The position numbers and the translations under genes were made by a program. The notes under the pieces are model-generated. The model made no database searches. It had not been told where the DNA came from and saw nothing but the letters and a program-made list of their open reading frames with translations. Positions 10,701 to 36,804 of a stretch of 40,366 bases of DNA are shown here, piece by piece. Numbering within the stretch: position 1 is the stretch's first letter; each line of letters opens with the position of its first letter. This DNA is from Utricularia gibba (lineage: Eukaryota; Plantae; Magnoliophyta): assembly GCA_002189035.1 (NCBI GenBank), contig NEEC01000257.1:1-40366 (forward strand). The letters are read 5' to 3'.

Positions 10701-11642
10701 TTTGTTTAAATTATGATGTCACGTGCACCCACATGATTTTTTCAACAACTTACTTTATTGAGAGGCGGTCTTGGGCACTTGGAACCGGAAAAAGATCAGC
10801 TTAGGCCTTGGCCAAAGTAAGTTGTAGCCCGGCAAAGAAAGTGATGTATTTATTAACGTTCGGTTTTCGGTGTTGCCTACATGGTTTTTCAAGGAACAGC
10901 TTCTCGTTTTGTGGCGGCCAGTCTCGCTAGGAACTTGGTCCGGCCCGCGATTCTTTATGGCTCATGAGGACAAAAGGATGCAAATCGATGAATACAATGT
11001 TGCATTTGTTTAAATTGCGATATCACGTGCACCCACATGATTTTTTCAACAACTTACTTTATACTTGAGCAGGCGGTCTTGGGTGCACTGGAACGGGACA
11101 AAGGTAAGGTTTGGCTTGCCCGAGTTAGTTGTAGTCCGGCAAATAAAGTGATGTATTTATTATCGTTCGGTTTTCGGGGGCTGCCTACATGGTTTTTCAA
11201 GGAACCGCTTCTCGTTTTGTGGCGGCCAGTCTCGCTGGAACTTGGTCCTTGACCCGATTCTGTATGGCTCATGAGGTCAACTGGATGCAAATCGATTAAA
11301 AAAAATGATCCATTTGTTTAAATTATGATGTCACGTGCACCCCACATGATTTTTTCAACAACTTACTTTATACTTGAGAGGCGGTCTTGGGTGCACTTGG
11401 AACCGGAAAAAGATCAGCTTAGGCTTGGCCCAAAGTAAGTTGTAGCCCGGCAAAGAAAGTGATGTATTTATTAACGTTCGGTTTTCGGTGTTGCCTACAT
11501 GGTTTTTCAAGGAACAGCTTCTCGTTTTGTGGCGGCCAGTCTCGCTAGGAACTTGGTCCGGGCCCGCGATTCTTTATGGCTCATGAGGACAAAAGGATGC
11601 AAATCGATGAATACAATGTTGCATTTGTTTAAATTGCGATAT
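1734..11642 (+). repeat. Strictly alternating B-A dimer domain (16 dimers, ~620-630 bp each), canonical variants
   Basis: All 32 monomers typed by head and tail diagnostics alternate B,A,B,A. No hybrid monomer or A' haplotype was seen. Confidence 0.92.
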
Positions 11643-13204
11643 CACGTGCACCCCACATGATTTTTTCAACAACTTACTTTATACTTGAGCAGGCGGTCTT
11701 TGGGTGCACCTGGAACGGGACAAAGGTAAGGTTTGGCTTGCACGAGAGTTAGTTGTAGTCCGGCAAATAAAGTGATGTATTTATTATCGTTCGGTTTTCG
11801 GGGGCTGCCTACATGGTTTTTCAAGGAACCGCTTCTCGTTTTGTGGCGGCCAGTCTCGCTGGGAACTTGGTCCTTGACCCCGATTCTGTATGGCTCATGA
11901 GGTCAACTGGATGCAAATCGATTAAAAAAAATGATGCATTTGTTTAAATTACGATGTCACGTGCACCCCACATGATTTTTTTAACAACATACTTTATACA
12001 TGAGGAGGCGGTCTTGGGGGCACTTGGAACCGGAAAAAGATCAGCTTAGGCCTTGGCCCAAAGTAAGTTGTAGCCCGGCAAAGAAAGTGATGTATTTATT
12101 AACGTTCGGTTTTCGGTGTTGCCTACATGGTTTTTCAAGGAACAGCTTCTCGTTTTGTGGCGGCCAGTCTCGCTAGGAACTTGGTCCGGGCCCGCGATTC
12201 TTTATGGCTCATGAGGACAAAAGGATGCAAATCGATGAATACAATGTTGCATTTGTTTAAATTGCGATATCACGTGCACCCCACATGATTTTTTCAACAA
12301 CTTACTTTATACTTGAGCAGGCGGTCTTTGGGTGCACTGGAACGGGACAAAGGTAAGGTTTGGCTTGCACCGAGAGTTAGTTGTAGTCCGGCAAATAAAG
12401 TGATGTATTTATTATCGTTCGGTTTTCGGGGCTGCCTACATGGTTTTTCAAGGAACCGCTTCTCGTTTTGTGGCGGCCAGTCTCGCTGGGAACTTGGTCC
12501 TTGACCCGATTCTGTATGGCTCATGAGGTCAACTGGATGCAAATCGATTAAAAAAAATGATCCATTTGTTTAAATTATGATGTCACGTGCACCCCACATG
12601 ATTTTTTCAACAACTTACTTTATACTTGAGAAGGCGGTCTTGGGTGCACTTGGAACCGGAAAAAGATCAGCTTAGGCCTTGGCCCAAAGTAAGTTGTAGC
12701 CCGGCAAAGAAAGTGATGTATTTATTAACGTTCGGTTTTCGGTGTTGCCTACATGGTTTTTCAAGGAACAGCTTCTCGTTTTGTGGCGGCCAGTCTCGCT
12801 AGGAACTTGGTCCGGGCCCGCGATTCTTTATGGCTCATGAGGACAAAAGGATGCAAATCGATGAATACAATGTTGCATTTGTTTAAATTGCGATATCACG
12901 TGCACCCCACATGATTTTTTCAACAACTTACTTTATACTTGAGCAGGCGGTCTTTGGGTGCACTGGAACGGGACAAAGGTAAGGTTTGGCTTGCCCAGAG
13001 TTAGTTGTAGTCCGGCAAATAAAGTGATGTATTTATTATCGTTCGGTTTTCGGGCTGCCTACATGGTTTTTCAAGGAACCGCTTCTCGTTTTGTGGCGGC
13101 CAGTCTCGCTGGGAACTTGGTCCTCCCCGATTCTGTATGGCTCATGAGGTCAACTGGATGCAAATCGATTAAAAAAAATGATGCATTTGTTTAAATTACG
13201 ATGT

Positions 13205-13516
13205 CACGTGCACCCCACATGATTTTTTTAACAACTACTTTATACTTGAGAGGCGGTCTTTGGGGCACTTGGAACCGGAAAAAGATCAGCTTAGGCCTTG
13301 GCCCAAAGTAAGTTGTAGCCCGGCAAAGAAAGTGATGTATTTATTAACGTTCGGTTTTCGGTGTTGCCTACATGGTTTTTCAAGGAACAGCTTCTCGTTT
13401 TGTGGCGGCCAGTCTCGCTGGGAACTTGGTCCTTGACCCGATTCTGTATGGCTCATGAGGTCAACTGGATGCAAATCGATTAAAAAAAATGATTGCATTT
13501 GTTTAAATTATGATGT
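13205..13516 (+). repeat. Hybrid monomer H (A head + B tail); others at 14752, 20332, 21895, 24083, 25627, 27172 and 35563
   Basis: A diagnostics run through CAAGGAACAG (13381-13390). B diagnostics start at CTCGCTGGGAAC (~13420), followed by CCTTGACCCG and GAGGTCAACTGG. Confidence 0.9.
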
Positions 13517-16300
13517 CACGTGCACCCCACATGATTTTTTCAACAACTTACTTTATACTTGAGAAGGCGGTCTTTGGGTGCACTTGGAACCGGAAAAAGA
13601 TCAGCTTAGGCCTTGGCCCAAAGTAAGTTGTAGCCCGGCAAAGAAAGTGATGTATTTATTAACGTTCGGTTTTCGGTGTTGCCTACATGGTTTTTCAAGG
13701 AACAGCTTCTCGTTTTGTGGCGGCCAGTCTCGCTAGGAACTTGGTCCGGGCCCGCGATTCTTATGGCTCATGAGGACAAAAGGATGCAAATCGATGAATA
13801 CAATGTTGCATTTGTTTAAATTGCGATATCACGTGCACCCCACATGATTTTTTCAACAACTTACTTTATACTTGAGCAGGCGGTCTTTGGTGCACCTGGA
13901 ACGGGACAAAGAAGCTTTGGCTTGCACCGAAGTTAGTTGTAGCCGGCAAATAAAGTGATGTATTATTATCGTTCGGTTTTCGGGGTGCCTACATGGTTTT
14001 TCAAGGAACGCTTCTCGTTTGTGGCGGCCAGTCTCGCTGGAAACTTGGTCCTTGACCCCGATTCTGTATGGCTCATGAGGTCAACTGGATGCAAATCGAT
14101 TAAAAAAAGATCCATTTGTTTAAATTATGATGTCACGTGCACCCCACATGATTTTTTCAACAACTTACTTTATACTTGAAGGCGGTCTTTGGGTGCACTT
14201 GGAACCGGAAAAAGATCAGCTTAGGCCTTGGCCCAAAGTAAGTTGTAGCCCGGCAAAGAAGTGATGTATTTATTAACGTTCGGTTTTCGGTGTTGCCTAC
14301 ATGGTTTTTCAAGGAACAGCTTCTCGTTTTGTGCGGCCAGTCTCGCTAGGAACTTGGTCCGGGCCCGCGATTCTTTATGGCTCATGAGGACAAAAGGATG
14401 CAAATCGATGAATACAATGTTGCATTTGTTTAAATTGCGATATCACGTGCACCCCACATGATTTTTTCAACAACTTACTTTATACTTGAGCAGGCGGTCT
14501 TGGGTGCACCTTGGAACGGGACAAAGGTAAGGTTTGGCTTGCACCGAGAGTTAGTTGTAGTCCGGCAAATAAAGTGATGTATTTATTATCGTTCGGTTTC
14601 GGGGGCTGCCTACATGGTTTTTCAAGGAACCGCTTCTCGTTTTGTGGCGGCCAGTCTCGCTGGGAACTTGGTCCTTGATTCTGTATGGCTCATGAGGTCA
14701 ACTGGATGCAAATCGATTAAAAAAATGATGCATTTGTTTAAATTACGATGTCACGTGCACCACATGATTTTTTAACAACATACTTTATACATGAGAGGCG
14801 GTCTTGGGGGGCACTTGGAACCGGAAAAAGATCAGCTTAGGCCTTGGCCCAAAGTAAGTTGTAGCCCGGCAAAAAGTGATGTATTTATTACGTTCGGTTT
14901 TCGGGTTGCCTACATGGTTTTTCAAGGAACAGCTTCTCGTTTTGTGGCGGCCAGTCTCGCTGGGAACTTGGTCCTTGACCCGATTCTGTATGGCTCATGA
15001 GGTCAACTGGATGCAAATCGATTAAAAAAATGATGCATTTGTTTAAATTATGATGTCACGTGCACCCCACATGATTTTTTAACAACTTACTTTATACTTG
15101 AGAGGCGGTCTTTGGGTGCACTTGGAACCGGAAAAAGATCAGCTTAGGCCTTGGCCCAAAGTAAGTTGTAGCCGGCAAAGAAAGTGATGTATTTATTAAC
15201 GTTCGGTTTTCGGTGTTGCCTACATGGTTTTTCAAGGAACAGCTTCTCGTTTTGTGGCGGCCAGTCTCGCTAGGAACTTGGTCCGGGCCCGATTCTTATG
15301 GCTCATGAGGACAAAAGGATGCAAATCGATGAATACAATGTTGCATTTGTTTAAATTGCGATATCACGTGCACCCCACATGATTTTTTCAACAACTTACT
15401 TTATACTTGAGCAGGCGGTCTTTGGGTGCACCTGGAACGGGACAAAGGTAAGGTTTGGCTTGCACGAGAGTTAGTTGTAGTCCGGCAAATAAAGTGATGT
15501 ATTTATTATCGTTCGGTTTTCGGGGCTGCCTACATGGTTTTTCAAGGAACCGCTTCTCGTTTTGTGGCGGCCAGTCTCGCTGGGAACTTGGTCCTTGACC
15601 CCGATTCTGTATGGCTCATGAGGTCAACTGGATGCAAATCGATTAAAAAAAATGATGCATTTGTTTAAATTACGATGTCACGTGCACCCCACATGATTTT
15701 TTAACAACATACTTTATACATGAGGAGGGTCTTGGGGGGCACTTGGAACCGGAAAAAGATCAGCTTAGGCCTGGCCCAAAGTAAGTTGTAGCCCGGCAAA
15801 GAAAGTGATGTATTTATTAACGTTCGGTTTTCGGTGTTGCCTACATGGTTTTTCAAGGAACAGCTTCTCGTTTTGTGGCGGCCAGTCTCGCTAGGAACTT
15901 GGTCCGGGCCCGCGATTCTTTATGGCTCATGAGGACAAAAGGATGCAAATCGATGAATACAATGTTGCATTTGTTTAAATTGCGATATCACGTGCACCCC
16001 ACATGATTTTTTCAACAACTTACTTTATACTTGAGCAGGCGGTCTTTGGGTGCACCTGGAACGGGACAAAGGTAAGGTTTGGCTTGCAAAGTTAGTTGTA
16101 GTCCGGCAAATAAAGTGATGTATTTATTATCGTTCGGTTTTCGGGGGCTGCCTACATGGTTTTTCAAGGAACCGCTTCTCGTTTGTGGCGGCCAGTCTCG
16201 CTGGGAACTTGGTCCTTGACCCCGATTCTGTATGGCTCATGAGGTCAACTGGATGCAAATCGATTAAAAAAAAATGATCCATTTGTTTAAATTACGATGT

Positions 16301-16922
16301 CACGTGCACCCCACATGATTTTTTTAACAACATACTTTATACATGAGGAGGCGGTCTTGGGGGCACTTGGAACCGGAAAAAGATCAGCTTAGGCCTTGGC
16401 CCAAAGTAAGTTGTAGCCCGGCAAAGAAAGTGATGTATTTATTAACGTTCGGTTTTCGGTGTTGCCTACATGGTTTTTCAAGGAACAGCTTCTCGTTTTG
16501 TGGCGGCCAGTCTCGCTAGGAACTTGGTCCGGGCCCGCGATTCTTTATGGCTCATGAGGACAAAAGGATGCAAATCGATGAATACAATGTTGCATTTGTT
16601 TAAATTGCGATATCACGTGCACCCCACATGATTTTTTCAACAACTTACTTTATACTTGAGAAGGCGGTCTTTGGGTGCACTTGGAACGGAAAAAGGTCAG
16701 CTTAGGCCTTGGCCCAAAGTAAGTTGTAGCCCGGCAAAGAAAGTGATGTATTTATTAACGTTCGGTTTTCGGGTTGCCTACATGGTTTTTCAAGGAACAG
16801 CTTCTCGTTTTGTGGCGGCCAGTCTCGCTGGAACTTGGTCCGGCCCCGATTCTTTATGGCTCATGAGGACAAAAGGATGCAAATCGATGAATACAATGTT
16901 GCATTTGTTTAAATTGCGATAT
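16301..16922 (+). repeat. A-A doublet (no intervening B); similar doublets at 17841-18462 and 37118-37727
   Basis: Two consecutive monomers have A heads (GATCAGC or GGTCAGC) and A tails (GAGGACAAA...TTGCGATAT). Confidence 0.75.
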
Positions 16923-19397
16923 CACGTGCACCCCACATGATTTTTTCAACAACTTACTTTATACTTGAGAGGCGGTCTTTGGGTGCACTGGAACGGGAAA
17001 AGGCTTTGGCTTGCCCAAGTAAGTTGTAGTCCGGCAAATAAAGTGATGTATTTATTATCGTTCGGTTTTCGGGGCTGCCTACATGGTTTTTCAAGGAACC
17101 GCTTCTCGTTTTGTGGCGGCCAGTCTCGCTGGGAACTTGGTCCTTGACCCGATTCTGTATGGCTCATGAGGTCAACTGGATGCAAATCGATTAAAAAAAA
17201 TGATCATTTGTTTAAATTACGATCACGTGCACCCCACATGATTTTTTAACAACTACTTTATACTGAGAGGCGGTCTTGGGGGCACTTGGAACCGGAAAAA
17301 GATCAGCTTAGGCCTTGGCCCAAAGTAAGTTGTAGCCCGGCAAAGAAAGTGATGTATTTATTAACGTTCGGTTTTCGGTGTTGCCTACATGGTTTTTCAA
17401 GGAACAGCTTCTCGTTTTGTGGCGGCCAGTCTCGCTAGGAACTTGGTCCGGGCCCCGATTCTTTATGGCTCATGAGGACAAAAGGATGCAAATCGATGAA
17501 TACAATGTTGCATTTGTTTAAATTGCGATATCACGTGCACCCCACATGATTTTTTTCAACAACTTACTTTATACTTGAGCAGGCGGTCTTTGGGGCACTG
17601 GAACGGGAAAAGGTAAGGTTTGGCTTGCCAGAGTTAGTTGTAGTCCGGCAAATAAAGTGATGTATTTATTATCGTTCGGTTTTCGGGGGCTGCCTACATG
17701 GTTTTTCAAGGAACCGCTTCTCGTTTGTGGCGGCCAGTCTCGCTGGGAACTTGGTCCTTGACCCGATTCTGTATGGCTCATGAGGTCAACTGGATGCAAA
17801 TCGATTAAAAAAAATGATCCATTTGTTTAAATTACGATGTCACGTGCACCCCACATGATTTTTTTAACAACATACTTTATACATGAGGAGGCGGTCTTGG
17901 GGGGCACTTGGAACCGGAAAAAGATCAGCTTAGGCCTTGGCCCAAAGTAAGTTGTAGCCCGGCAAAGAAAGTGATGTATTTATTAACGTTCGGTTTTCGG
18001 TGTTGCCTACATGGTTTTTCAAGGAACAGCTTCTCGTTTTGTGCGGCCAGTCTCGCTAGGAACTTGGTCCGGGCCCGCGATTCTTTATGGCTCATGAGGA
18101 CAAAAGGATGCAAATCGATGAAACAATGTTGCATTTGTTTAAATTGCGATATCACGTGCACCCCACATGATTTTTTAACAACTTACTTTATACTTGAGAA
18201 GGCGGTCTTTGGGTGCACTTGGAACCGGAAAAAGATCAGCTTAGGCCTTGGCCCAAAGTAAGTTGTAGCCCGGCAAAGAAAGTGATGTATTTATTAACGT
18301 TCGGTTTTCGGTGTTGCCTACATGGTTTTTCAAGGAACAGCTTCTCGTTTTGTGGCGGCCAGTCTCGCTAGGAACTTGGTCCGGGCCCGCGATTCTTTAT
18401 GGCTCATGAGGACAAAAGGATGCAAATCGATGAAAATGTTGCATTTGTTTAAATTGCGATATCACGTGCACCCACATGATTTTTTCAACAACTTACTTTA
18501 TACTTGAGCAGGCGGTCTTTGGGTGCACCTGGGGACAAAGGTAAGGTTTGGCTTGCACCGAGAGTTAGTTGTAGTCCGGCAAATAAAGTGATGTATTTAT
18601 TATCGTTCGGTTTTCGGGGCTGCCTACATGGTTTTTCAAGGAACCGCTTCTCGTTTTGTGGCGGCCAGTCTCGCTGGGAACTTGGTCCTTGACCCCGATT
18701 CTGTATGGCTCATGAGGTCAACTGGATGCAAATCGATTAAAAAAAATGATCATTTGTTTAAATTACGATGTCACGTGCACCCCACATGATTTTTTTAACA
18801 ACATACTTTATACATGAGGAGGCGGTCTTGGGGGGCACTTGGAACCGGAAAAAGATCAGCTTAGGCCTTGGCCCAAAGTAAGTTGTAGCCCGGCAAAGAA
18901 AGTGATGTATTTATTAACGTTCGGTTTTCGGTGTTGCCTACATGGTTTTTCAAGGAACAGCTTCTCGTTTTGGGCGGCCAGTCTCGCTAGGAACTTGGTC
19001 CGGGCCCGCGATTCTTTATGGCTCATGAGGACAAAAGGATGCAAATCGATGAATAAATGTTGCATTTGTTTAAATTGCGATATCACGTGCACCCACATGA
19101 TTTTTTCAACAACTTACTTTATACTTGAGAGGCGGTCTTTGGGTGCACCTGGAACGGGACAAAGGTAAGGTTTGGCTTGCAAAGAGAGTTAGTTGTAGTC
19201 CGGCAAATAAAGTGATGTATTTATTATCGTTCGGTTTTCGGGGGCTGCCTACATGGTTTTTCAAGGAACCGCTTCTCGTTTTGTGGCGGCCAGTCTCGCT
19301 GGGAACTTGGTCCTTGACCCCGATTCTGTATGGCTCATGAGGTCAACTGGATGCAAATCGATTAAAAAAAATGATGCATTTGTTTAAATTACGATGT

Positions 19398-19707
19398 CAC
19401 GTGCACCCCACATGATTTTTTTAACAACATACTTTATACATGAGGAGGCGGTCTTGGGGGCACTTGGAACCGGAAAAAGATCAGCTTAGGCCTTGGCCAA
19501 AAGTAAGTTGTAGCCGGCAAATAAAGTGATGTATTTATTATCGTTCGGTTTTCGGGGTGCCTACATGGTTTTTCAAGGAACCGCTTCTCGTTTTGTGGCG
19601 GCCAGTCTCGCTGGGAACTTGGTCCTTGACCCGATTCTGTATGGCTCATGAGGTCAACTGGATGCAAATCGATTAAAAAAAATGATGCATTTGTTTAAAT
19701 TATATGT
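19398..19707 (+). repeat. Hybrid monomer with a different, earlier A-to-B switch point
   Basis: A' head through AAAGTAAG (~19507), then B diagnostics from GGCAAATAAAG (~19516-19526), TTATCGTT, AACCGC, CTGGGAAC and GAGGTCAACTG. Confidence 0.8.
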
Positions 19708-20018
19708 CACGTGCACCCCACATGATTTTTTTAACAACATACTTTATACTGAGAAGGCGGTCTTTGGGGCACTTGGAACCGGAAAAAGATCAGCTTAGGC
19801 CTTGGCCCAAGTAAGTTGTAGCCCGGCAAAGAAAGTGATGTATTTATTAACGTTCGGTTTTCGGTGTTGCCTACATGGTTTTTCAAGGAACAGCTTCTCG
19901 TTTTGTGGCGGCCAGTCTCGCTAGGAACTTGGTCCGGGCCCGCGATTCTTTATGGCTCATGAGGACAAAAGGATGCAAATCGATGAATACAATGTTGCAT
20001 TTGTTTAAATTGCGATAT

Positions 20019-23000
20019 CACGTGCACCCCACATGATTTTTTCAACAACTTACTTTATACTTGAGCAGGCGGTCTTTGGGTGCACCTGGAACGGGACAAA
20101 GGTAAGGTTTGGCTTGCACGAGAGTTAGTTGTAGTCCGGCAAATAAAGTGATGTATTTATTATCGTTCGGTTTTCGGGGGCTGCCTACATGGTTTTTCAA
20201 GGAACCGCTTCTCGTTTTGTGGCGGCCAGTCTCGCTGGGAACTTGGTCCTTGACCCCGATTCTGTATGGCTCATGAGGTCAACTGGATGCAAATCGATTA
20301 AAAAAATGATCATTTGTTTAAATTACGATGTCACGTGCACCCCACATGATTTTTTTAACAACATACTTTATACTGAGGAGGCGGTCTTGGGGGGCACTTG
20401 GAACCGGAAAAAGATCAGCTTAGGCCTTGGCCCAAAGTAAGTTGTAGCCCGGCAAAGAAAGTGATGTATTTATTAACGTTCGGTTTTCGGTGTTGCCTAC
20501 ATGGTTTTTCAAGGAACAGCTTCTCGTTTTGTGGCGGCCAGTCTCGCTGGGAACTTGGTCCTTGACCCCGATTCTGTATGGCTCATGAGGTCAACTGGAT
20601 GCAAATCGATTAAAAAAAATGATGCATTTGTTTAAATTATGATGTCACGTGCACCCCACATGATTTTTTAACAACTACTTTATACATGAGGAGGCGGTCT
20701 TGGGGGCACTTGGAACGGAAAAAGGTCAGCTTAGGCTTGGCCCAAAGTAAGTTGTAGCCCGGCAAAGAAAGTGATGTATTTATTAACGTTCGGTTTTCGG
20801 TGTTGCCTACATGGTTTTTCAAGGAACAGCTTCTCGTTTTGTGGCGGCCAGTCTCGCTAGGAACTTGGTCCGGGCCCCGCGATTCTTTATGGCTCATGAG
20901 GACAAAGGATGCAAATCGATGAATACAATGTTGCATTTGTTTAAATTGCGATATCACGTGCACCCACATGATTTTTTCAACAACTTACTTTATACTTGAG
21001 CAGGCGGTCTTTGGGTGCACCTGGAACGGGACAAAGGTAAGGTTGGGCTTGCACGAGAGTTAGTTGTAGTCCGGCAAATAAAGTGATGTATTTATTATCG
21101 TTCGTTTTTTCGGGGGCTGCCTACATGGTTTTTCAAGGAACGCTTCTCGTTTTGTGGCGGCCAGTCTCGCTGGGAACTTGGTCCTTGACCCCGATTCTGT
21201 ATGGCTCATGAGGTCAACTGGATGCAAATCGATTAAAAAAAATGATGCATTTGTTTAAATTATGATGTCACGTGCACCCCACATGATTTTTTCAACAACT
21301 TACTTTATACTTGAGAAGGCGGTCTTTGGGTGCACTTGGAACCGGAAAAAGATCAGCTTAGGCTTGGCCAAAGTAAGTTGTAGCCCGGCAAAGAAAGTGA
21401 TGTATTTATTAACGTTCGGTTTTCGGTGTTGCCTACATGGTTTTTCAAGGAACAGCTTCTCGTTTTGTGGCGGCCAGTCTCGCTAGGAACTTGGTCCGGG
21501 CCCGCGATTCTTTATGGCTCATGAGGACAAAAGGATGCAAATCGATGAATACAATGTTGCATTTGTTTAAATTGCGATATCACGTGCACCCCACATGATT
21601 TTTTCAACAACTTACTTTATACTTGAGCAGGCGGTCTTTGGGTGCACCTGGAACGGGACAAAGGTAAGGTTTGGCTTGCACCGAGAGTTAGTTGTAGTCC
21701 GGCAAATAAAGTGATGTATTTATTATCGTTCGGTTTTCGGGGCTGCCTACATGGTTTTTCAAGGAACCGCTTCTCGTTTTGTGGCGGCCAGTCTCGCTGG
21801 GAACTTGGTCCTTGACCCGATTCTGTATGGCTCATGAGGTCAACTGGATGCAAATCGATTAAAAAAAATGATGCATTTGTTTAAATTACGATGTCACGTG
21901 CACCCCACATGATTTTTTCAACATACTTTATACATGAGGAGGCGGTCTTGGGGGCACTTGGAACCGGAAAAAGATCAGCTTAGGCCTTGGCCCAAAGTAA
22001 GTTGTAGCCCGGCAAAGAAAGTGATGTATTTATTAACGTTCGGTTTTCGGTGTTGCCTACATGGTTTTTCAAGGAACAGCTTCTCGTTTTGTGGCGGCCA
22101 GTCTCGCTGGGAACTTGGTCCTTGACCCGATTCTGTATGGCTCATGAGGTCAACTGGATGCAAATCGATTAAAAAAAAATGATGCATTTGTTTAAATTAT
22201 GATGTCACGTGCACCCCACATGATTTTTTTAACTACTTTATACATGAGGAGGCGGTCTTGGGGGCACTTGGAACCGGAAAAAGGTCAGCTTAGGCCTTGG
22301 CCCAAAGTAAGTTGTAGCCCGGCAAAGAAAGTGATGTATTTATTAACGTTCGGTTTTCGGTGTTGCCTACATGGTTTTTCAAGGAACAGCTTCTCGTTTT
22401 GTGGCGGCCAGTCTCGCTAGGAACTTGGTCCGGGCCCGCGATTCTTTATGGCTCATGAGGACAAAAGGATGCAAATCGATGAATACAATGTTGCATTTGT
22501 TTAAATTGCGATATCACGTGCACCCCACATGATTTTTTCAACAACTTACTTTATACTTGAGCAGGCGGTCTTTGGGTGCACTGGAACGGACAAAGGTAAG
22601 GTTTGGCTTGCACCGAGAGTTAGTTGTAGTCCGGCAAATAAAGTGATGTATTTATTATCGTTCGGTTTTCGGGGGCTGCCTACATGGTTTTTCAAGGAAC
22701 CGCTTCTCGTTTTGTGGCGGCCAGTCTCGCTGGGAACTTGGTCCTTGACCCCGATTCTGTATGGCTCATGAGGTCAACTGGATGCAAATCGATTAAAAAA
22801 AATGATGCATTTGTTTAAATTATGATGTCACGTGCACCCCACATGATTTTTTCAACAACTTACTTTATACTTGAGAAGGCGGTCTTTGGGTGCACTTGGA
22901 ACCGGAAAAAGATCAGCTTAGGCCTTGGCCCAAAGTAAGTTGTAGCCCGGCAAAGAAAGTGATGTATTTATTAACGTTCGGTTTTCGGTGTTGCCTACAT

Positions 23001-26000
23001 GGTTTTTCAAGGAACAGCTTCTCGTTTTGTGGCGGCCAGTCTCGCTAGGAACTTGGTCCGGGCCCGCGATTCTTTATGGCTCATGAGGACAAAAGGATGC
23101 AAATCGATGAAACAATGTTGCATTTGTTTAAATTGCGATATCACGTGCACCCCACATGATTTTTTCAACAACTTACTTTATACTTGAGCAGGCGGTCTTT
23201 GGGTGCACCTGGAACGGGACAAAGGTAAGGTTTGGCTTGCACCGAGAGTTAGTTGTAGTCCGGCAAATAAAGTGATGTATTTATTATCGTTCGGTTTTCG
23301 GGGGCTGCCTACATGGTTTTTCAAGGAACCGCTTCTCGTTTTGTGGCGGCCAGTCTCGCTGGGAACTTGGTCCTTGACCCCGATTCTGTATGGCTCATGA
23401 GGTCAACTGGATGCAAATCGATTAAAAAAAATGATGCATTTGTTTAAATTACGATGTCACACACCCACATGATTTTTTTAACAACATACTTTATACTGAG
23501 GAGGCGGTCTTGGGGGGCACTTGGAACCGGAAAAAAGGTCAGCTTAGGCCTTGGCCCAAAGTAAGTTGTAGCCCGGCAAAGAAAGTGATGTATTTATTAA
23601 CGTTCGGTTTTCGGTGTTGCCTACATGGTTTTTCAAGGAACAGCTTCTCGTTTTGTGGCGGCCAGTCTCGCTAGGAACTTGGTCCGGGCCCGCGATTCTT
23701 TATGGCTCATGAGGACAAAAGGATGCAAATCGATGAATACAATGTTGCATTTGTTTAAATTGCGATATCACGTGCACCCCACATGATTTTTTCAACAACT
23801 TACTTTATACTTGAGCAGGCGGTCTTTGGGGGCACCTGGAACGGGACAAAGGTAAGGTTTGGCTTGCACGAGAGTTAGTTGTAGTCCGGCAAATAAAGTG
23901 ATGTATTTATTATCGTTCGGTTTTCGGGGGCTGCCTACATGGTTTTTCAAGGAACCGCTTCTCGTTTTGTGGCGGCCAGTCTCGCTGGGAACTTGGTCCT
24001 TGACCCGATTCTGTATGGCTCATGAGGTCAACTGGATGCAAATCGATTAAAAAAAATGATGCATTTGTTTAAATTACGATGTCACGTGCCCCACATGATT
24101 TTTTAACAACTTACTTTATACTGAGGAGGCGGTCTTGGGGGGCACTTGGAACCGGAAAAAGATCAGCTTAGGCCTAAAGTAAGTTGTAGCCCGGCAAAGA
24201 AAGTGATGTATTTATTAACGTTCGGTTTTCGGTGTTGCCTACATGGTTTTTCAAGGAACAGCTTCTCGTTTTGTGGCGGCCAGTCTCGCTGGAACTTGGT
24301 CCTTGACCCCGATTCTGTATGGCTCATGAGGTCAACTGGATGCAAATCGATTAAAAAAAATGATGCATTTGTTTAAATTGATGTCACGTGCACCCACATG
24401 ATTTTTTAACAACTACTTTATACTGAGGAGGCGGTCTTTGGGGGGCACTTGGAACCGGAAAAAGGTCAGCTTAGGCCTTGGCCCAAAGTAAGTTGTAGCC
24501 CGGCAAAGAAAGTGATGTATTTATTAACGTTCGGTTTTCGGTGTTGCCTACATGGTTTTTCAAGGAACAGCTTCTCGTTTTGTGGCGGCCAGTCTCGCTA
24601 GGAACTTGGTCCGGGCCCCGATTCTTTATGGCTCATGAGGACAAAAGGATGCAAATCGATGAATACAATGTTGCATTTGTTTAAATTGCGATATCACGTG
24701 CACCCCACATGATTTTTTCAACAACTTACTTTATACTTGAGCAGGCGGTCTTTGGGTGCACCTGGAACGGGACAAAGGTAAGGTTTGGCTTGCCGAGAGT
24801 TAGTTGTAGTCCGGCAAATAAAGTGATGTATTTATTATCGTTCGGTTTTCGGGGCTGCCTACATGGTTTTTCAGGAACCGCTTCTCGTTTTGTGGCGGCC
24901 AGTCTCGCTGGGAACTTGGTCCTTGACCCCGATTCTGTATGGCTCATGAGGTCAACTGGATGCAAATCGATTAAAAAAAATGATCCATTTGTTTAAATTA
25001 TGATGTCACGTGCACCCCACATGATTTTTTCAACAACTTACTTTATACTTGAGAAGGCGGTCTTGGGTGCACTTGGAACCGGAAAAAGATCAGCTTAGGC
25101 TTGGCCCAAAGTAAGTTGTAGCCGGCAAAGAAAGTGATGTATTTATTAACGTTCGGTTTCGGTGTTGCCTACATGGTTTTTCAAGGAACAGCTTCTCGTT
25201 TTGTGGCGGCCAGTCTCGCTAGGAACTTGGTCCGGCCCGCGATTCTTTATGGCTCATGAGGACAAAAGGATGCAAATCGATGAATACAATGTTGCATTTG
25301 TTTAAATTGCGATATCACGTGCACCCACATGATTTTTTCAACAACTTACTTTATACTTGAGCAGGCGGTCTTTGGGTGCACCTGGAACGGGACAAAGGTA
25401 AGGTTTGGCTTGCCGAGAGTTAGTTGTAGTCCGGCAAATAAAGTGATGTATTTATTATCGTTCGGTTTTCGGGGCTGCCTACATGGTTTTTCAAGGAACC
25501 GCTTCTCGTTTTGTGGCGGCCAGTCTCGCTGGGAACTTGGTCCTTGACCCCGATTCTGTATGGCTCATGAGGTCAACTGGATGCAAATCGATTAAAAAAA
25601 TGATGCATTTGTTTAAATTACGATGTCACGTGCACCCCACATGATTTTTTTAACAACTTACTTTATACTGAGGAGGCGGTCTTGGGGGCACTTGGAACCG
25701 GAAAAAGATCAGCTTAGGCCTTGGCCCAAAGTAAGTTGTAGCCCGGCAAAGAAAGTGATGTATTTATTAACGTTCGGTTTTCGGTGTTGCCTACATGGTT
25801 TTTCAAGGAACAGCTTCTCGTTTTGTGGCGGCCAGTCTCGCTGGGAACTTGGTCCCCCCGATTCTTATGGCTCATGAGGTCAACTGGATGCAAATCGATT
25901 AAAAAATGATGCATTTGTTTAAATTGATGTCACGTGCACCCCACATGATTTTTTTAACAACTTACTTTATACTGAGAGGCGGTCTTTGGGGGGCACTTGG

Positions 26001-28366
26001 AACCGGAAAAAGGTCAGCTTAGGCTTGGCCCAAAGTAAGTTGTAGCCCGGCAAAGAAAGTGATGTATTTATTAACGTTCGGTTTTCGGTGTTGCCTACAT
26101 GGTTTTTCAAGGAACAGCTTCTCGTTTTGTGGCGGCCAGTCTCGCTAGGAACTTGGTCCGGGCCCGCGATTCTTTATGGCTCATGAGGACAAAAGGATGC
26201 AAATCGATGAATACAATGTTGCATTTGTTTAAATTGCGATATCACGTGCACCCACATGATTTTTTCAACAACTTACTTTATACTTGAGCAGGCGGTCTTT
26301 GGGTGCACCTGGAACGGGACAAAGGTAAGGTTGGCTTGCACCGAGAGTTAGTTGTAGTCCGGCAAATAAAGTGATGTATTTATTATCGTTCGGTTTTCGG
26401 GGCTGCCTACATGGTTTTTCAAGGAACCGCTTCTCGTTTTGTGGCGGCCAGTCTCGCTGGGAACTTGGTCCTTGACCCGATTCTGTATGGCTCATGAGGT
26501 CAACTGGATGCAAATCGATTAAAAAAAAGATCCATTTGTTTAAATTATGATGTCACGTGCACCCCACATGATTTTTTCAACAACTTACTTTATACTTGAG
26601 AAGGCGGTCTTGGGTGCACTTGGAACCGGAAAAAGATCAGCTTAGGCTTGGCCCAAAGTAAGTTGTAGCCCGGCAAAGAAAGTGATGTATTTATTAACGT
26701 TCGGTTTTCGGTGTTGCCTACATGGTTTTTCAAGGAACAGCTTCTCGTTTTGTGGCGGCCAGTCTCGCTAGGAACTTGGTCCGGGCCCGCGATTCTTTAT
26801 GGCTCATGAGGACAAAAGGATGCAAATCGATGAATACAATGTTGCATTTGTTTAAATTGCGATATCACGTGCACCCCACATGATTTTTTCAACTTACTTT
26901 ATACTTGAGCAGGCGGTCTTTGGGTGCACCTGGAACGGGACAAAGGTAAGGTTTGGCTTGCACCGAGAGTTAGTTGTAGTCCGGCAAATAAAGTGATGTA
27001 TTTATTATCGTTCGGTTTCGGGGGCTGCCTACATGGTTTTTCAAGGAACCGCTTCTCGTTTTGTGGCGGCCAGTCTCGCTGGGAACTTGGTCCCCCGATT
27101 CTGTATGGCTCATGAGGTCAACTGGATGCAAATCGATTAAAAAAATGATGCATTTGTTTAAATTACGATGTCACGTGCACCCACATGATTTTTTAACAAC
27201 TTACTTTATACTGAGGAGGCGGTCTTGGGGGGCACTTGGAACCGGAAAAGATCAGCTTAGGCCTGGCCCAAAGTAAGTTGTAGCCGGCAAAGAAAGTGAT
27301 GTATTTATTAACGTTCGGTTTTCGGTGTTGCCTACATGGTTTTTCAAGGAACAGCTTCTCGTTTTGTGGCGCCAAAAAAATATGGCTCATGAGGTCAACT
27401 GGATGCAAATCGATCATTTGTTTAAATTATGATGTCACGTGCACCCCACATGATTTTTAACAACTTACTTTATACTTGAGAGGCGGTCTTGGGGGCACTT
27501 GGAACGGAAAAGGTCAGCTTAGGCCTTGGCCCAAGTAAGTTGTAGCCCGGCAAAGAAAGTGATGTATTTATTAACGTTCGGTTTTCGGTGTTGCCTACAT
27601 GGTTTTTCAAGGAACAGCTTCTCGTTTTGTGGCGGCCAGTCTCGCTAGGAACTTGGTCCGGGCCCGCGATTCTTTATGGCTCATGAGGACAAAAGGATGC
27701 AAATCGATGAATACAATGTTGCATTTGTTTAAATTGCGATATCACGTGCACCCCACATGATTTTTTCAACAACTTACTTTATACTTGAAGGCGGTCTTTG
27801 GGTGCACCTGGAACGGGACAAAGGTAAGGTTTGGCTTGCAGAGAGTTAGTTGTAGTCCGGCAAATAAAGTGATGTATTTATTATCGTTCGGTTTTCGGGG
27901 GCTGCCTACATGGTTTTTCAAGGAACCGCTTCTCGTTTTTGGCGGCCAGTCTCGCTGGGAACTTGGTCCTTGACCCCGATTCTGTATGGCTCATGAGGTC
28001 AACTGGATGCAAATCGATTAAAAAAAATGATCCATTTGTTTAAATTATGATGTCACGTGCACCCCACATGATTTTTTCAACAACTTACTTTATACTTGAG
28101 AAGGCGGTCTTTGGGTGCACTTGGAACCGGAAAAAGATCAGCTTAGGCCTTGGCCCAAAGTAAGTTGTAGCCCGGCAAAGAAAGTGATGTATTTATTAAC
28201 GTTCGGTTTTCGGTGTTGCCTACATGGTTTTTCAAGGAACAGCTTCTCGTTTTGTGGCGGCCAGTCTCGCTAGGAACTTGGTCCGGCCCGCGATTCTTTA
28301 TGGCTCATGAGGACAAAAGGATGCAAATCGATGAATACAATGTTGCATTTGTTTAAATTGCGATAT
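20019..28366 (+). repeat. Five-monomer higher-order repeat block (B*-H-A''-B-A, ~1.50-1.56 kb): five full copies plus one truncated B*-A'' copy
   Basis: Full HOR copies start at 20019, 21581, 23769, 25316 and 26866 (lengths 1562, 1561, 1547, 1550, 1501). The truncated copy spans 23142-23768. Each full copy has a hybrid H in position 2 and the AAGGTCAGC marker in position 3. Confidence 0.9.
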
Positions 28367-31300
28367 CACGTGCACCCACATGATTTTTCAACAACTTACT
28401 TTATACTTGAGCAGGCGGTCTTTGGGTGCACCTGGAACGGGACAAAGGTAAGGTTTGGCTTGCACCGAGAGTTAGTTGTAGTCCGGCAAATAAAGTGATG
28501 TATTTATTATCGTTCGGTTTTCGGGGGCTGCCTACATGGTTTTTCAAGGAACCGCTTCTCGTTTGTGGCGGCCAGTCTCGCTGGGAACTTGGTCCTTGAC
28601 CCCGATTCTGTATGGCTCATGAGGTCAACTGGATGCAAATCGATTAAAAAAAATGATCCATTTGTTTAAATTATGATGTCACGTGCACCCCATGATTTTT
28701 TCAACAACTTACTTTATACTTGAGAAGGCGGTCTTTGGGTGCACTTGGAACCGGAAAAAGATCAGCTTAGGCCTTGGCCAAAGTAAGTTGTAGCCCGGCA
28801 AAGAAAGTGATGTATTTATTAACGTTCGGTTTTCGGTGTTGCCTACATGGTTTTTCAAGGAACAGCTTCTCGTTTTGTGGCGGCCAGTCTCGCTAGGAAC
28901 TTGGTCCGGGCCCGATTCTTTATGGCTCATGAGGACAAAAGGATGCAAATCGATGAATACAATGTTGCATTTGTTTAAATTGCGATATCACGTGCACCCC
29001 ACATGATTTTTTCAACAACTTACTTTATACTTGAGCAGGCGGTCTTTGGGTGCACCTGGAACGGGACAAAGGTAAGGTTTGGCTTGCACCGAGAGTTAGT
29101 TGTAGTCCGGCAAATAAAGTGATGTATTTATTATCGTTCGGTTTTCGGGGGCTGCCTACATGGTTTTTCAAGGAACCGCTTCTCGTTTTGTGGCGGCCAG
29201 TCTCGCTGGGAACTTGGTCCTTGACCCCGATTCTGTATGGCTCATGAGGTCAACTGGATGCAAATCGATTAAAAAAAAATGATCCATTTGTTTAAATTAT
29301 GATGTCACGTGCACCCACATGATTTTTTCAACAACTTACTTTATACTTGAGAGGCGGTCTTTGGGTGCACTTGGAACCGGAAAAAGATCAGCTTAGGCCT
29401 TGGCCCAAAGTAAGTTGTAGCCCGGCAAAGAAAGTGATGTATTTATTAACGTTCGGTTTTCGGTGTTGCCTACATGGTTTTTCAAGGAACAGCTTCTCGT
29501 TTTTGGCGGCCAGTCTCGCTAGGAACTTGGTCCGGGCCCGCGATTCTTTATGGCTCATGAGGACAAAAGGATGCAAATCGATGAATACAATGTTGCATTT
29601 GTTTAAATTGCGATATCACGTGCACCCCACATGATTTTTTCAACAACTTACTTTATACTTGAGCAGGCGGTCTTTGGGTGCACCTGGAACGGGACAAAGG
29701 TAAGGTTTGGCTTGCACGAGAGTTAGTTGTAGTCCGGCAAATAAAGTGATGTATTTATTATCGTTCGGTTTTCGGGGGCTGCCTACATGGTTTTTCAAGG
29801 AACCGCTTCTCGTTTTGTGGCGGCCAGTCTCGCTGGGAACTTGGTCCTTGACCCCGATTCTGTATGGCTCATGAGGTCAACTGGATGCAAATCGATTAAA
29901 AAAAATGATCCATTTGTTTAAATTATGATGTCACGTGCACCCCACATGATTTTTTCAACAACTTACTTTATACTTGAGAAGGCGGTCTTGGGTGCACTTG
30001 GAACCGGAAAAAGATCAGCTTAGGCCTTGGCCCAAAGTAAGTTGTAGCCCGGCAAAGAAAGTGATGTATTTATTAACGTTCGGTTTTCGGTGTTGCCTAC
30101 ATGGTTTTTCAAGGAACAGCTTCTCGTTTTGTGGCGGCCAGTCTCGCTAGGAACTTGGTCCGGCCCGCGATTCTTTATGGCTCATGAGGACAAAAGGATG
30201 CAAATCGATGAATACAATGTTGCATTTGTTTAAATTGCGATATCACGTGCACCCCACATGATTTTTTCAACAACTTACTTTATACTTGAGCAGGCGGTCT
30301 TTGGGTGCACCTGGAACGGACAAAGGTAAGGTTTGGCTTGCACCGAGAGTTAGTTGTAGTCCGGCAAATAAAGTGATGTATTTATTATCGTTCGGTTTTC
30401 GGGGGCTGCCTACATGGTTTTTCAAGAACCGCTTCTCGTTTTGTGGCGGCCAGTCTCGCTGGGAACTTGGTCCTTGACCCCGATTCTGTATGGCTCATGA
30501 GGTCAACTGGATGCAAATCGATTAAAAAAAATGATCCATTTGTTTAAATTATGATGTCACGTGCACCCCACATGATTTTTTCAACAACTTACTTTATACT
30601 TGAGAAGGCGGTCTTTGGGTGCACTTGGAACCGGAAAAAGATCAGCTTAGGCCTTGGCCCAAAGTAAGTTGTAGCCCGGCAAAGAAAGTGATGTATTTAT
30701 TAACGTTCGGTTTTCGGTGTTGCCTACATGGTTTTTCAAGGAACAGCTTCTCGTTTTGTGGCGGCCAGTCTCGCTAGGAACTTGGTCCGGCCCGCGATTC
30801 TTTATGGCTCATGAGGACAAAAGGATGCAAATCGATGAATACAATGTTGCATTTGTTTAAATTGCGATATCACGTGCACCCCACATGATTTTTTCAACAA
30901 CTTACTTTATACTTGAGCAGGCGGTCTTTGGGTGCACCTGGAACGGGACAAAGGTAAGGTTTGGCTTGCACCGAGAGTTAGTTGTAGTCCGGCAAATAAA
31001 GTGATGTATTTATTATCGTTCGGTTTTCGGGGGCTGCCTACATGGTTTTTCAAGGAACCGCTTCTCGTTTTGTGGCGGCCAGTCTCGCTGGGAACTTGGT
31101 CCTTGACCCCGATTCTGTATGGCTCATGAGGTCAACTGGATGCAAATCGATTAAAAAAAATGATCCATTTGTTTAAATTATGATGTCACGTGCACCCCAC
31201 ATGATTTTTTCAACAACTTACTTTATACTTGAGAAGGCGGTCTTGGGTGCACTTGGAACCGGAAAAAGATCAGCTTAGGCCTTGGCCCAAAGTAAGTTGT

Positions 31301-33995
31301 AGCCCGGCAAAGAAAGTGATGTATTTATTAACGTTCGGTTTTCGGTGTTGCCTACATGGTTTTTCAAGGAACAGCTTCTCGTTTTGTGGCGGCCAGTCTC
31401 GCTAGGAACTTGGTCCGGGCCCGCGATTCTTTATGGCTCATGAGGACAAAAGGATGCAAATCGATGAATACAATGTTTTTGTTTAAATTGCGATATCACG
31501 TGCACCCCACATGATTTTTTCAACAACTTACTTTATACTTGAGCAGGCGGTCTTTGGTGCACCTGGAACGGGACAAAGGTAAGGTTTGGCTTGCACGAGA
31601 GTTAGTTGTAGTCCGGCAAATAAAGTGATGTATTTATTATCGTTCGGTTTTCGGGGCTGCCTACATGGTTTTTCAGGAACCGCTTCTCGTTTGTGGCGGC
31701 CAGTCTCGCTGGGAACTTGGTCCTTGACCCCGATTCTGTATGGCTCATGAGGTCAACTGGATGCAAATCGATTAAAAAAAATGATCCATTTGTTTAAATT
31801 ATGATGTCACGTGCACCCCACATGATTTTTTCAACAACTTACTTTATACTTGAGAAGGCGGTCTTGGGTGCACTTGGAACCGGAAAAAGATCAGCTTAGG
31901 CCTTGGCCCAAAGTAAGTTGTAGCCCGGCAAAGAAAGTGATGTATTTATTAACGTTCGGTTTTCGGTGTTGCCTACATGGTTTTTCAAGGAACAGCTTCT
32001 CGTTTTGTGGCGGCCAGTCTCGCTAGGAACTTGGTCCGGCCCGCGATTCTTTATGGCTCATGAGGACAAAAGGATGCAAATCGATGAATACAATGTTGCA
32101 TTTGTTTAAATTGCGATATCACGTGCACCCACATGATTTTTTCAACAACTTACTTTATACTTGAGCAGGCGGTCTTTGGGTGCACCTGGAACGGGACAAA
32201 GGTAAGGTTTGGCTTGCACCGAGAGTTAGTTGTAGTCCGGCAAATAAAGTGATGTATTTATTATCGTTCGGTTTTCGGGGGCTGCCTACATGGTTTTTCA
32301 AGGAACCGCTTCTCGTTTGTGGCGGCCAGTCTCGCTGGGAACTTGGTCCTTGACCCCGATTCTGTATGGCTCATGAGGTCAACTGGATGCAAATCGATTA
32401 AAAAAAATGATCATTTGTTTAAATTATGATGTCACGTGCACCCCACATGATTTTTTCAACAACTTACTTTATACTTGAGAAGGCGGTCTTGGGTGCACTT
32501 GGAACCGGAAAAAGATCAGCTTAGGCCTTGGCCAAAGTAAGTTGTAGCCCGGCAAAGAAAGTGATGTATTTATTAACGTTCGGTTTTTCGGTGTTGCCTA
32601 CATGGTTTTTCAAGGAACAGCTTCTCGTTTTGTGGCGGCCAGTCTCGCTAGGAACTTGGTCCGGCCCGCGATTCTTTATGGCTCATGAGGACAAAAGGAT
32701 GCAAATCGATGAATACAATGTTGCATTTGTTTAAATTGCGATATCACGTGCACCCACATGATTTTTTCAACAACTTACTTTATACTTGAGCAGGCGGTCT
32801 TTGGGTGCACCTGGAACGGACAAAGGTAAGGTTTGGCTTGCACCGAGAGTTAGTTGTAGTCCGGCAAATAAAGTGATGTATTTATTATCGTTCGGTTTTC
32901 GGGGGCTGCCTACATGGTTTTTCAAGGAACCGCTTCTCGTTTTGTGGCGGCCAGTCTCGCTGGGAACTTGGTCCTTGACCCCGATTCTGTATGGCTCATG
33001 AGGTCAACTGGATGCAAATCGATTAAAAAAAATGATCCATTTGTTTAAATTATGATGTCACGTGCACCCCACATGATTTTTTCAACAACTTACTTTATAC
33101 TTGAGAAGGCGGTCTTTGGGTGCACTTGGAACCGGAAAAAGATCAGCTTAGGCCTTGGCCCAAAGTAAGTTGTAGCCCGGCAAAGAAAGTGATGTATTTA
33201 TTAACGTTCGGTTTTCGGTGTTGCCTACATGGTTTTTCAAGGAACAGCTTCTCGTTTTGTGGCGGCCAGTCTCGCTAGGAACTTGGTCCGGGCCCGCGAT
33301 TCTTTATGGCTCATGAGGACAAAAGGATGCAAATCGATGAATACAATGTTGCATTTGTTTAAATTGCGATATCACGTGCACCCACATGATTTTTTCAACA
33401 ACTTACTTTATACTTGAGCAGGCGGTCTTGGGTGCACTGGAACGGGACAAAGGTAAGGTTTGGCTTGCATCGAGAGTTAGTTGTAGTCCGGCAAATAAAG
33501 TGATGTATTTATTATCGTTCGGTTTTCGGGGGCTGCCTACATGGTTTTTCAAGGAACCGCTTCTCGTTTGTGGCGGCCAGTCTCGCTGGGAACTTGGTCC
33601 TTGACCCCGATTCTGTATGGCTCATGAGGTCAACTGGATGCAAATCGATTAAAAAAATGATCCATTTGTTTAAATTATGATGTCACGTGCACCCCACATG
33701 ATTTTTTCAACAACTTACTTTATACTTGAGAAGGCGGTCTTTGGGGCACTTGGAACCGGAAAAAGATCAGCTTAGGCCTTGGCCCAAAGTAAGTTGTAGC
33801 CCGGCAAAGAAAGTGATGTATTTATTAACGTTCGGTTTTCGGTGTTGCCTACATGGTTTTTCAAGGAACAGCTTCTCGTTTTGTGGCGGCCAGTCTCGCT
33901 AGGAACTTGGTCCGGGCCGCGATTCTTTATGGCTCATGAGGACAAAAGGATGCAAATCGATGAATACAATGTTGCATTTGTTTAAATTGCGATAT

Positions 33996-34311
33996 CACGT
34001 GCACCCCACATGATTTTTTCAACAACTTACTTTATACTTGAGCAGGCGGTCTTTGGGTGCACCTGGAACGGGACAAAGGTAAGGTTTGGCTTGCACCGAG
34101 AGTTAGTTGTAGTCCGGCAAATAAAGTGATGTATTTATTATCGTTCGGTTTTCGGGGGCTGCCTACATGGTTTTTCAAGGAACCGCTTCTCGTTTTGTGG
34201 CGGCCAGTCTCGCTGGGAACTTGGTCCTTGACCCCGATTCTGTATGGCTCATGAGGTCAACTGGATGCAAATCGATTAAAAAAAATGATCCATTTGTTTA
34301 AATTATGATGT
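33996..34311 (+). repeat. Representative clean type-B monomer (316 bp)
   Basis: Head diagnostics: GAGCAGGCGG, CACCTGGAACGGGACAAAGGTAAGGTTTGGCTTGCACCGAGAGTTAG. Tail diagnostics: AACCGC, CTGGGAAC, CCTTGACCCCG, GAGGTCAACTGG, GATTAAAAAAAATGATCCATTTG, TTATGATGT. About 40 differences from A by manual alignment (~87% identity). Confidence 0.97.
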
Positions 34312-34625
34312 CACGTGCACCCCACATGATTTTTTCAACAACTTACTTTATACTTGAGAAGGCGGTCTTTGGGTGCACTTGGAACCGGAAAAAGATCAGC
34401 TTAGGCCTTGGCCCAAAGTAAGTTGTAGCCCGGCAAAGAAAGTGATGTATTTATTAACGTTCGGTTTTCGGTGTTGCCTACATGGTTTTTCAAGGAACAG
34501 CTTCTCGTTTTGTGGCGGCCAGTCTCGCTAGGAACTTGGTCCGGGCCCGCGATTCTTTATGGCTCATGAGGACAAAAGGATGCAAATCGATGAATACAAT
34601 GTTGCATTTGTTTAAATTGCGATAT
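34312..34625 (+). repeat. Representative clean type-A monomer (314 bp)
   Basis: Head diagnostics: GAGAAGGCGG, CACTTGGAACCGGAAAAAGATCAGCTTAGGCCTTGGCCCAAAGTAAG. Tail diagnostics: AACAGC, CTAGGAAC, CCGGGCCCGCG, GAGGACAAAAGG, GATGAATACAATGTTGCATTTG, TTGCGATAT. Hand count gives 140/314 G+C (~45%). Confidence 0.97.
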
Positions 34626-35250
34626 CACGTGCACCCCACATGATTTTTTAACAACTTACTTTATACTTGAGCAGGCGGTCTTTGGGTGCACCTGGAACGG
34701 GACAAAGGTAAGGTTTGGCTTGCACGAGAGTTAGTTGTAGTCCGGCAAATAAAGTGATGTATTTATTATCGTTCGGTTTTCGGGGGCTGCCTACATGGTT
34801 TTTCAAGGAACCGCTTCTCGTTTGTGGCGGCCAGTCTCGCTGGGAACTTGGTCCTTGACCCGATTCTGTATGGCTCATGAGGTCAACTGGATGCAAATCG
34901 ATTAAAAAAAATGATCCATTTGTTTAAATTATGATGTCACGTGCACCCCACATGATTTTTTCAACAACTTACTTTATACTTGAGAAGGCGGTCTTTGGGT
35001 GCACTTGGAACCGGAAAAAGATCAGCTTAGGCCTTGGCCCAAAGTAAGTTGTAGCCCGGCAAAGAAAGTGATGTATTTATTAACGTTCGGTTTTCGTGTT
35101 GCCTACATGGTTTTTCAAGGAACAGCTTCTCGTTTTGTGGCGGCCAGTCTCGCTAGGAACTTGGTCCGGGCCCGCGATTCTTTATGGCTCATGAGGACAA
35201 AAGGATGCAAATCGATGAATACAATGTTGCATTTGTTTAAATTGCGATAT

Positions 35251-36804
35251 CACGTGCACCCCACATGATTTTTTCAACAACTTACTTTATACTTGAGCAG
35301 GCGGTCTTTGGGGCACCTGGAACGGGACAAAGGTAAGGTTTGGCTTGCACGAGAGTTAGTTGTAGTCCGGCAAATAAAGTGATGTATTTATTATCGTTCG
35401 GTTTTCGGGGGCTGCCTACATGGTTTTTCAAGGAACCGCTTCTCGTTTTGTGGCGGCCAGTCTCGCTGGGAACTTGGTCCTTGACCCCGATTCTGTATGG
35501 CTCATGAGGTCAACTGGATGCAAATCGATTAAAAAATGATGCATTTGTTTAAATTACGATGTCACGTGCACCCCACATGATTTTTTCAACAACTACTTTA
35601 TACTGAGAGGCGGTCTTGGGGGGCACTTGGAACCGGAAAAGATCAGCTTAGGCCTGGCCCAAAGTAAGTTGTAGCCCGGCAAAGAAAGTGATGTATTTAT
35701 TAACGTTCGGTTTTCGGTGTTGCCTACATGGTTTTTCAAGGAACAGCTTCTCGTTTTGTGGCGGCCAGTCTCGCTGGGAACTTGGTCCTTGACCCGATTC
35801 TGTATGGCTCATGAGGTCAACTGGATGCAAATCGATTAAAAAAAAATGATGCATTTGTTTAAATTATGATGTCACGTGCACCCCACATGATTTTTTTAAC
35901 AACATACTTTATAGAGGCGGTCTTGGGGGGCACTTGGAACCGGAAAAGGTCAGCTTAGGCCTTGGCCCAAAGTAAGTTGTAGCCCGGCAAAGAAAGTGAT
36001 GTATTTATTAACGTTCGGTTTTCGGTGTTGCCTACATGGTTTTTCAAGGAACAGCTTCTCGTTTTGTGGCGGCCAGTCTCGCTAGGAACTTGGTCCGGGC
36101 CCGCGATTCTTTATGGCTCATGAGGACAAAAGGATGCAAATCGATGAATACAATGTTGCATTTGTTTAAATTGCGATATCACGTGCACCCCACATGATTT
36201 TTTCAACAACTTACTTTATACTTGAGCAGGCGGTCTTTGGGTGCACCTGGAACGGGACAAAGGTAGGTTGGCTTGCACCGAGAGTTAGTTGTAGTCAAAT
36301 AAAGTGATGTATTTATTATCGTTCGGTTTTCGGGGGCTGCCTACATGGTTTTTCAAGGAACCGCTTCTCGTTTTGTGGCGGCCAGTCTCGCTGGGAACTT
36401 GGTCCTTGACCCCGATTCTGTATGGCTCATGAGGTCAACTGGATGCAAATCGATTAAAAAAAATGATCCATTTGTTTAAATTATGATGTCACGTGCACCC
36501 CACATGATTTTTTTTCAACAACTTACTTTATACTTGAGAAGGCGGTCTTTGGGTGCACTTGGAACCGGAAAAAGATCAGCTTAGGCCTTGGCCCAAAGTA
36601 AGTTGTAGCCCGGCAAAGAAAGTGATGTATTTATTAACGTTCGGTTTTCGGTGTTGCCTACATGGTTTTTCAAGGAACAGCTTCTCGTTTTGTGGCGGCC
36701 AGTCTCGCTAGGAACTTGGTCCGGCCCGCGATTCTTTATGGCTCATGAGGACAAAAGGATGCAAATCGATGAATACAATGTTGCATTTGTTTAAATTGCG
36801 ATAT
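35251..36804 (+). repeat. Isolated copy of the five-monomer HOR (B*-H-A''-B-A)
   Basis: B*35251 ends GATGCATTTG...TTACGATG. H35563 has an A head with AACAGC followed by CTGGGAAC...GAGGTCAACTGG. A''35873 has AAGGTCAGC. Then B36180 and A36490. Confidence 0.88.

Follow-up and report, generated by a model that had tools for sequence, protein, structure and literature searches.

The centromere repeats CEN178 of Arabidopsis, CentC of maize and CentO of rice are bound by CENH3 and carry higher-order repeats (HORs) that are mostly irregular. The present analysis concerns contig NEEC01000257.1 of the Utricularia gibba assembly GCA_002189035.1, where the whole stretch of 40,366 nucleotides (the window, positions 1-40366) is a single array of a 313-bp satellite, and, within it, a five-monomer unit with the order B*-H-A''-B-A, which occurs in six copies and contains one hybrid monomer, H. 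Human dimeric alpha satellite of suprachromosomal family 1 provides the closest described counterpart: J1-J2 dimers are organised in HORs, out-of-register events have given rise to hybrid monomers, and variants duplicate internal dimers, as in the order 1-2-3-4-3-4-5 (PMC6447721).

The U. gibba array is similar to the human family in having two alternating monomer classes arranged as dimers, unit copies closer to one another than their constituent monomers are, hybrids produced by out-of-register events and variants that gain or lose dimers. It differs in being an unrelated plant sequence with a monomer of 313 bp (perhaps itself an old dimer of ~157 bp) rather than 171 bp, in a distance between its two classes of 11% as compared with ~25% for J1 and J2, and in a unit present in five or six copies rather than thousands. 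With the plant satellite HORs it shares near-identical multi-monomer blocks of the kind that arise locally by unequal exchange, in a satellite of nucleosome or double-nucleosome size. Unlike CEN178, CentC and CentO, the unit here is defined by one recombinant monomer. The feature is real but ordinary and adds one more case of a process already known; an earlier, sequence-only reading of this stretch had placed its boundaries partly wrongly and over-read its meaning. 'Low-copy structural variant of the dimeric array' describes the block better than 'array-forming HOR'.

The satellite array is split at one place only by Tandem Repeats Finder (27371/27407), and G+C content is flat at 44-45% with constant skew along the window. 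A 20-base anchor, allowing up to 4 errors, was found at 130 evenly spaced sites that define 129 full monomers. Alignment of the monomers with MAFFT separated two clusters, A and B, which are ~11% apart and are cleanly told from one another by 34 diagnostic alignment columns, together with a third cluster formed by the hybrid H. The base unit of the array is the A-B dimer of 626 bp. Three variants of the two classes are recognised: A*, with four altered positions in the head; A'', which is A* with AAGATCAGC changed to AAGGTCAGC; and B*, with GATGCAT and TTACGAT in the tail. The two tail markers of B and H monomers (GATCCAT or GATGCAT, and TTATGAT or TTACGAT) lie ~25 bp apart and are seen in all four combinations, for example at 20300-20327, 20615-20641 and 21860-21890; this implies conversion or recombination between the markers, or else recurrent change or error.

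The hybrid monomer is the defining component of the unit. In H, the first 19 diagnostic columns are of A type and the last 15 of B type, with one clean switch between them, and this single change of class from A to B marks H as a hybrid monomer of out-of-register exchange. The switch falls in a 30-bp stretch that is common to A and B (GCTTCTCG...CTCGCT), at 20519-20548 in the first copy, so that the junction reads as A-type AACAGC, the shared stretch and then B-type GCTGGGAA. Eight of the nine hybrids in the window switch within this same interval. The exception, H2, switches about 70-90 bp earlier, after diagnostic position 12-13 rather than 19. In addition, six of the H copies have the same surroundings and the same tail, with B* before, A'' after and the markers GATGCAT and TTATGAT at the end of the monomer.

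Copies of the unit were called by monomer marker typing, and lag statistics were calculated on 27 monomers with 20000 permutations. Five copies of B*-H-A''-B-A with AAGGTCAGC in A'' are present at 20015-28363, with lengths of 1502-1562 bp, in near agreement with the 1501-1562 bp given by the sequence-only reading. The pattern is far beyond chance: monomers five positions apart have a mean identity of 0.980 compared with 0.942 for monomers two positions apart, a value reached in 0 of the 20000 permutations. GATGCAT and TTACGAT, proposed as markers of every B* tail, hold overall, the departure being copy 1, where B* has GATCAT in place of GATGCAT. The fixed order of distinguishable monomers is found in six units, and monomers at the same position in different units are 0.98-0.999 identical, as compared with 0.87-0.99 between monomers inside a unit. 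What is expected of an HOR, a long homogeneous head-to-tail array, is not seen; the units instead occur in runs of two and three, with one isolated unit and two relatives.

Digestion in silico with EcoRV and NsiI, which the sequence-only reading had suggested as checks, gave the predicted kinds of result: EcoRV fragments of ~930 bp and ~626 bp in the block, and NsiI cuts confined to the variant domains. Coordinates and fragment sizes of the individual features are listed in the table.

Organisation of the satellite array in the window (positions in bp; m, monomer number; TRF, Tandem Repeats Finder)
Feature	Positions	Details
Left domain of plain A-B dimers, monomers m000-m040	181-12892	Strict type alternation; EcoRV spacing 608-628 bp
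Sporadic variant monomers in left dimer domain	A* 803-1110 and 11954-12266; B* 11639-11953	Marker typing
Two pentamers, B*-H-A-B-A and B*-H-A-B*-A*	12893-15984	H breakpoint (m042, m047) as in the five copies of the block; without A''; EcoRV 933 and 921 bp
Two tandem pentamers of second kind, B-A*-A-B-A*	15985-19080	m052/m053 and m057/m058 both A type; EcoRV 309 and 310 bp from 16609 and 18148
Trimer B*-H2-A*	19081-20014	H2 is m062, 19394-19703; EcoRV 935 bp
HOR copy 1	20015-21576	1562 bp; H 20328-20641; first monomer with TTACGAT and GATCAT
HOR copy 2, B*-H-A''-B-A	21577-23137	1561 bp; H 21891-22201
Extra B*-A'' dimer	23138-23764	m074 B*, m075 A''; two consecutive 627-bp EcoRV fragments; raw lag peak 2188 bp
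HOR copy 3	23765-25312	1548 bp; H 24081-24381
HOR copy 4	25313-26861	1549 bp; H 25623-25926
HOR copy 5	26862-28363	1502 bp; H 27169-27431 (263 bp) with deletions; TRF split 27371/27407; EcoRV 877 bp
Right domain, 11 very uniform plain B-A dimers	28364-35246	0.09% substitutions between dimers; 0.27 off-type cells per monomer
Isolated sixth B*-H-A''-B-A copy	35247-36800	H 35559-35868; EcoRV 929 bp; NsiI 35539 and 35849
B-A*-A, third A-A junction	36801-37723	m119 (37114-37411) poorly resolved; EcoRV 312 bp at 37411
Plain B-A dimers to window end	37724-40231	Type alternation
Shortened mixed monomers (298-305 bp)	1730-2032, 6714-7015, 7326-7628, 8562-8863, 10412-10716, 13826-14129, 16919-17219, 37114-37411	

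The arrangement of the copies departs from the strictly tandem block, locally amplified among plain dimers, that the sequence-only reading had described. The five copies are split two and three by the extra B*-A'' dimer, which together with copy 2 makes a seven-monomer unit, and the run therefore reads as pentamer, heptamer and three pentamers. Nor are the surroundings plain: the sequence on the left at 12893-20014 consists of four pentamers and a trimer, the right side holds the sixth copy and an A-A junction, and plain dimers are restricted to 181-12892, 28364-35246 and 37724 to the end. With the sixth copy 7 kb away and other odd-numbered units spread across 12.9-20 kb, the pattern does not support one local amplification. 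Copy 5 is short because of two deletions in its H monomer, one of ~31 bp with an odd CCAAAAAAA filler and the other of 14 bp; these may reflect either a genuine rearrangement or a local error of the consensus.

A second kind of register shift is found where two A-type monomers are adjacent (A*-A), an arrangement that occurs three times and gives EcoRV fragments of ~310 bp. As both neighbours are A monomers, the exchange point lies within the ~50 bp at the conserved start of the monomer. The third of these junctions (37114-37723) is 18 kb from the two tandem A-A pentamers and is again located directly behind an H pentamer. H, H2 and the A-A junction together represent at least three different one-monomer register shifts in the window.

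These features are probably the outcome of two kinds of exchange in one homogenised dimeric array, in which an exchange misaligned by one monomer made H and in-register exchanges then copied the five-monomer unit. The initial exchange would have taken place between copies one monomer out of register, within the 30-bp stretch common to A and B, either by unequal crossover between sister chromatids or homologues or by break-induced or slipped replication. Its product would be an A* head joined to a B tail, the hybrid H, which would turn a run of dimers into the odd-numbered unit B*-H-A''-B-A. Subsequent in-register exchanges could have copied this unit to give the two and three copies at 20.0-28.4 kb, the single copy at 35.2 kb and the two relatives at 12.9-16.0 kb, while further misaligned exchanges would account for the trimer, the seven-monomer variant and the second, A-A type of pentamer. 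The monomer types, the clean switch in H, the constancy of its interval and neighbours, and the similarity with a period of five are observed, whereas the recombination mechanism, the order of events and the agreement of the contig with the true copy number are inferred. The two H pentamers on the left that do not contain A'' may represent separate events or variants produced by conversion. The unit could plausibly have arisen locally, since the window contains A, B, A* and B* in the form of plain dimers, one case being B*-A* at 11639-12266.

A number of observations weigh against this history. In the unit, two positions are hardly distinguishable from others (B* and B are 0.990 identical, A'' and A 0.981), and the unit exists in just five or six copies. 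Derivation of the seven-monomer unit from the pentamer by one in-register exchange does not yield the extra B*-A'' dimer; this dimer needs two events or a B*-A'' dimer that was already there. Two scans of metagenome contigs for exact matches to conserved 28- and 30-mers, one of them present in 117 of the window's 130 monomers, found no independent copy of the satellite. The remaining points concern the contig itself. Differences between copies are mostly indels, at ~1.9 events per 100 bp compared with 0.3 substitutions (573 indel and 235 substitution cells), with homopolymers accounting for 62% of the indel cells, which is the profile of long-read consensus noise. Moreover, in several monomers bases are missing or exchanged at precisely the columns that vary between A and B, in each monomer differently. 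The contig may thus misstate the number and placement of the units.

On an alternative account, which the excess of indels, their share in homopolymers and the mixed monomers favour, the odd-numbered units, or at least their number and order, would stem from overlaps falsely made, or copies collapsed, when near-identical repeats were assembled from noisy long reads. The mixed monomers with dropped bases look like the result of polishing on read pile-ups one monomer out of register, or of collapsed copies. In copies 3-6 the A'' heads fall between A* and A, and the density of deviations is 1.6-3.4-fold higher near variant sites. Several events also stand alone in the window, namely H2, the two deletions in copy 5's H and the monomer at 37114-37411. 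An artefact of this type is nevertheless improbable. False joins give unique breakpoints and not one 30-bp interval flanked by B* and A'' six times, and a mixed pile-up yields interleaved alleles rather than a single clean switch; for these reasons mixed pile-ups and false overlaps do not explain H away. Furthermore, exact repeats in the window do not exceed 582 bp, and therefore no stretch of consensus was laid down twice. That the shared 30-bp stretch is a recombination hot spot at which the nine H monomers arose separately is likewise improbable. Register shifts do appear to be frequent, as illustrated by the three different kinds found in the window, but independent events would not reproduce the same B*, the same A'' and the same GATGCAT and TTATGAT tail around six H copies.

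An origin outside the window is somewhat unlikely. Here the block would be the edge or remnant of an established HOR type that arose elsewhere in the satellite family, where it would form long arrays, with dimers and HOR units mixing at this location by unequal exchange or conversion. Consistent with this, the copies are scattered over 12.9-37.7 kb amid other odd-numbered units, and they are no more alike than the flanking dimers. Against it, the presence of A, B, A* and B* as plain dimers means that a local origin needs nothing external. Formation of H by a misaligned exchange within the dimeric array, followed by in-register copying of the unit, remains the preferred history.

The age of the unit was assessed from pairwise substitution divergence, which is 0.29% among the HOR copies (n = 5), 0.30% among the dimers on the left and 0.09% among those on the right. 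Copies of a young HOR should be less diverged than the repeats around them, and this is not what the values show; comparison of the two flanks gives zero fixed base differences in either the A or the B consensus. The entire 40 kb has been homogenised to the same degree and so offers no contrast in age; measured in this way, the block is no younger than the dimers that surround it. Of the proposal of a young, emerging five-monomer HOR in a dimer array, what holds is a low-copy unit with an embedded hybrid monomer, and the youth of the unit is not supported, its divergence being equal to that of the left flank and above that of the right. Uniformity is lower in the left part of the array (181-20014), which contains A*, B* and mixed monomers, than in the right (28364-35246), though both parts have the same A consensus and the same B consensus. 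The inner B marker (GATGCAT or GATCCAT) sets copies 1-2 apart from copies 3-6 and is the sole marker that orders the copies. A duplication history was attempted and set aside: the variants shared between copies are nearly all homopolymer indels, and one splitting marker is too little to build on.

The process described here has been in the textbooks since primate alpha satellite was studied, and the locus adds an example and not a principle. It is a small and clean plant case in which a dimeric satellite acquires an odd-numbered higher-order unit through one recombinant monomer, with variants of three, five and seven monomers side by side. It also carries a warning, as noise in the assembly's satellite contigs falls on the very sites that discriminate between monomers, and counts of units need read-level support.

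The putative centromeres in the long-read assembly of U. gibba are described as lacking satellite repeats, according to the citation of that work in PMC8333044. The window contains satellite only, with no flanking unique sequence, and a search of the accessible literature found no description of this satellite. It is unlikely that the 313-bp family, with actively rearranging units of several monomers, is the true centromeric satellite of U. gibba, left on unplaced contigs; were it so, the published view of satellite-free centromeres in this species would need revision.

Other properties of the satellite were also considered. A coding or RNA function was rejected, as the window contains only eight open reading frames of 90-117 amino acids, all within repeat sequence, and a 2-kb sample (20000-22000) had no Rfam match at E ≤ 1. 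Unusual secondary structure or an excess of dyad symmetry was likewise rejected on the basis of one monomer folded as DNA (z = +0.9). The 313-bp monomer (e.g. 2659-2971) resembles an old dimer of two ~157-bp halves, with blocks such as CCnACATGnTTTTTCAA and ACTTGG common to both; this half-repeat is weakly significant, with z ~3 in local alignment and a global identity of 59% compared with 54.5% in shuffled sequences.

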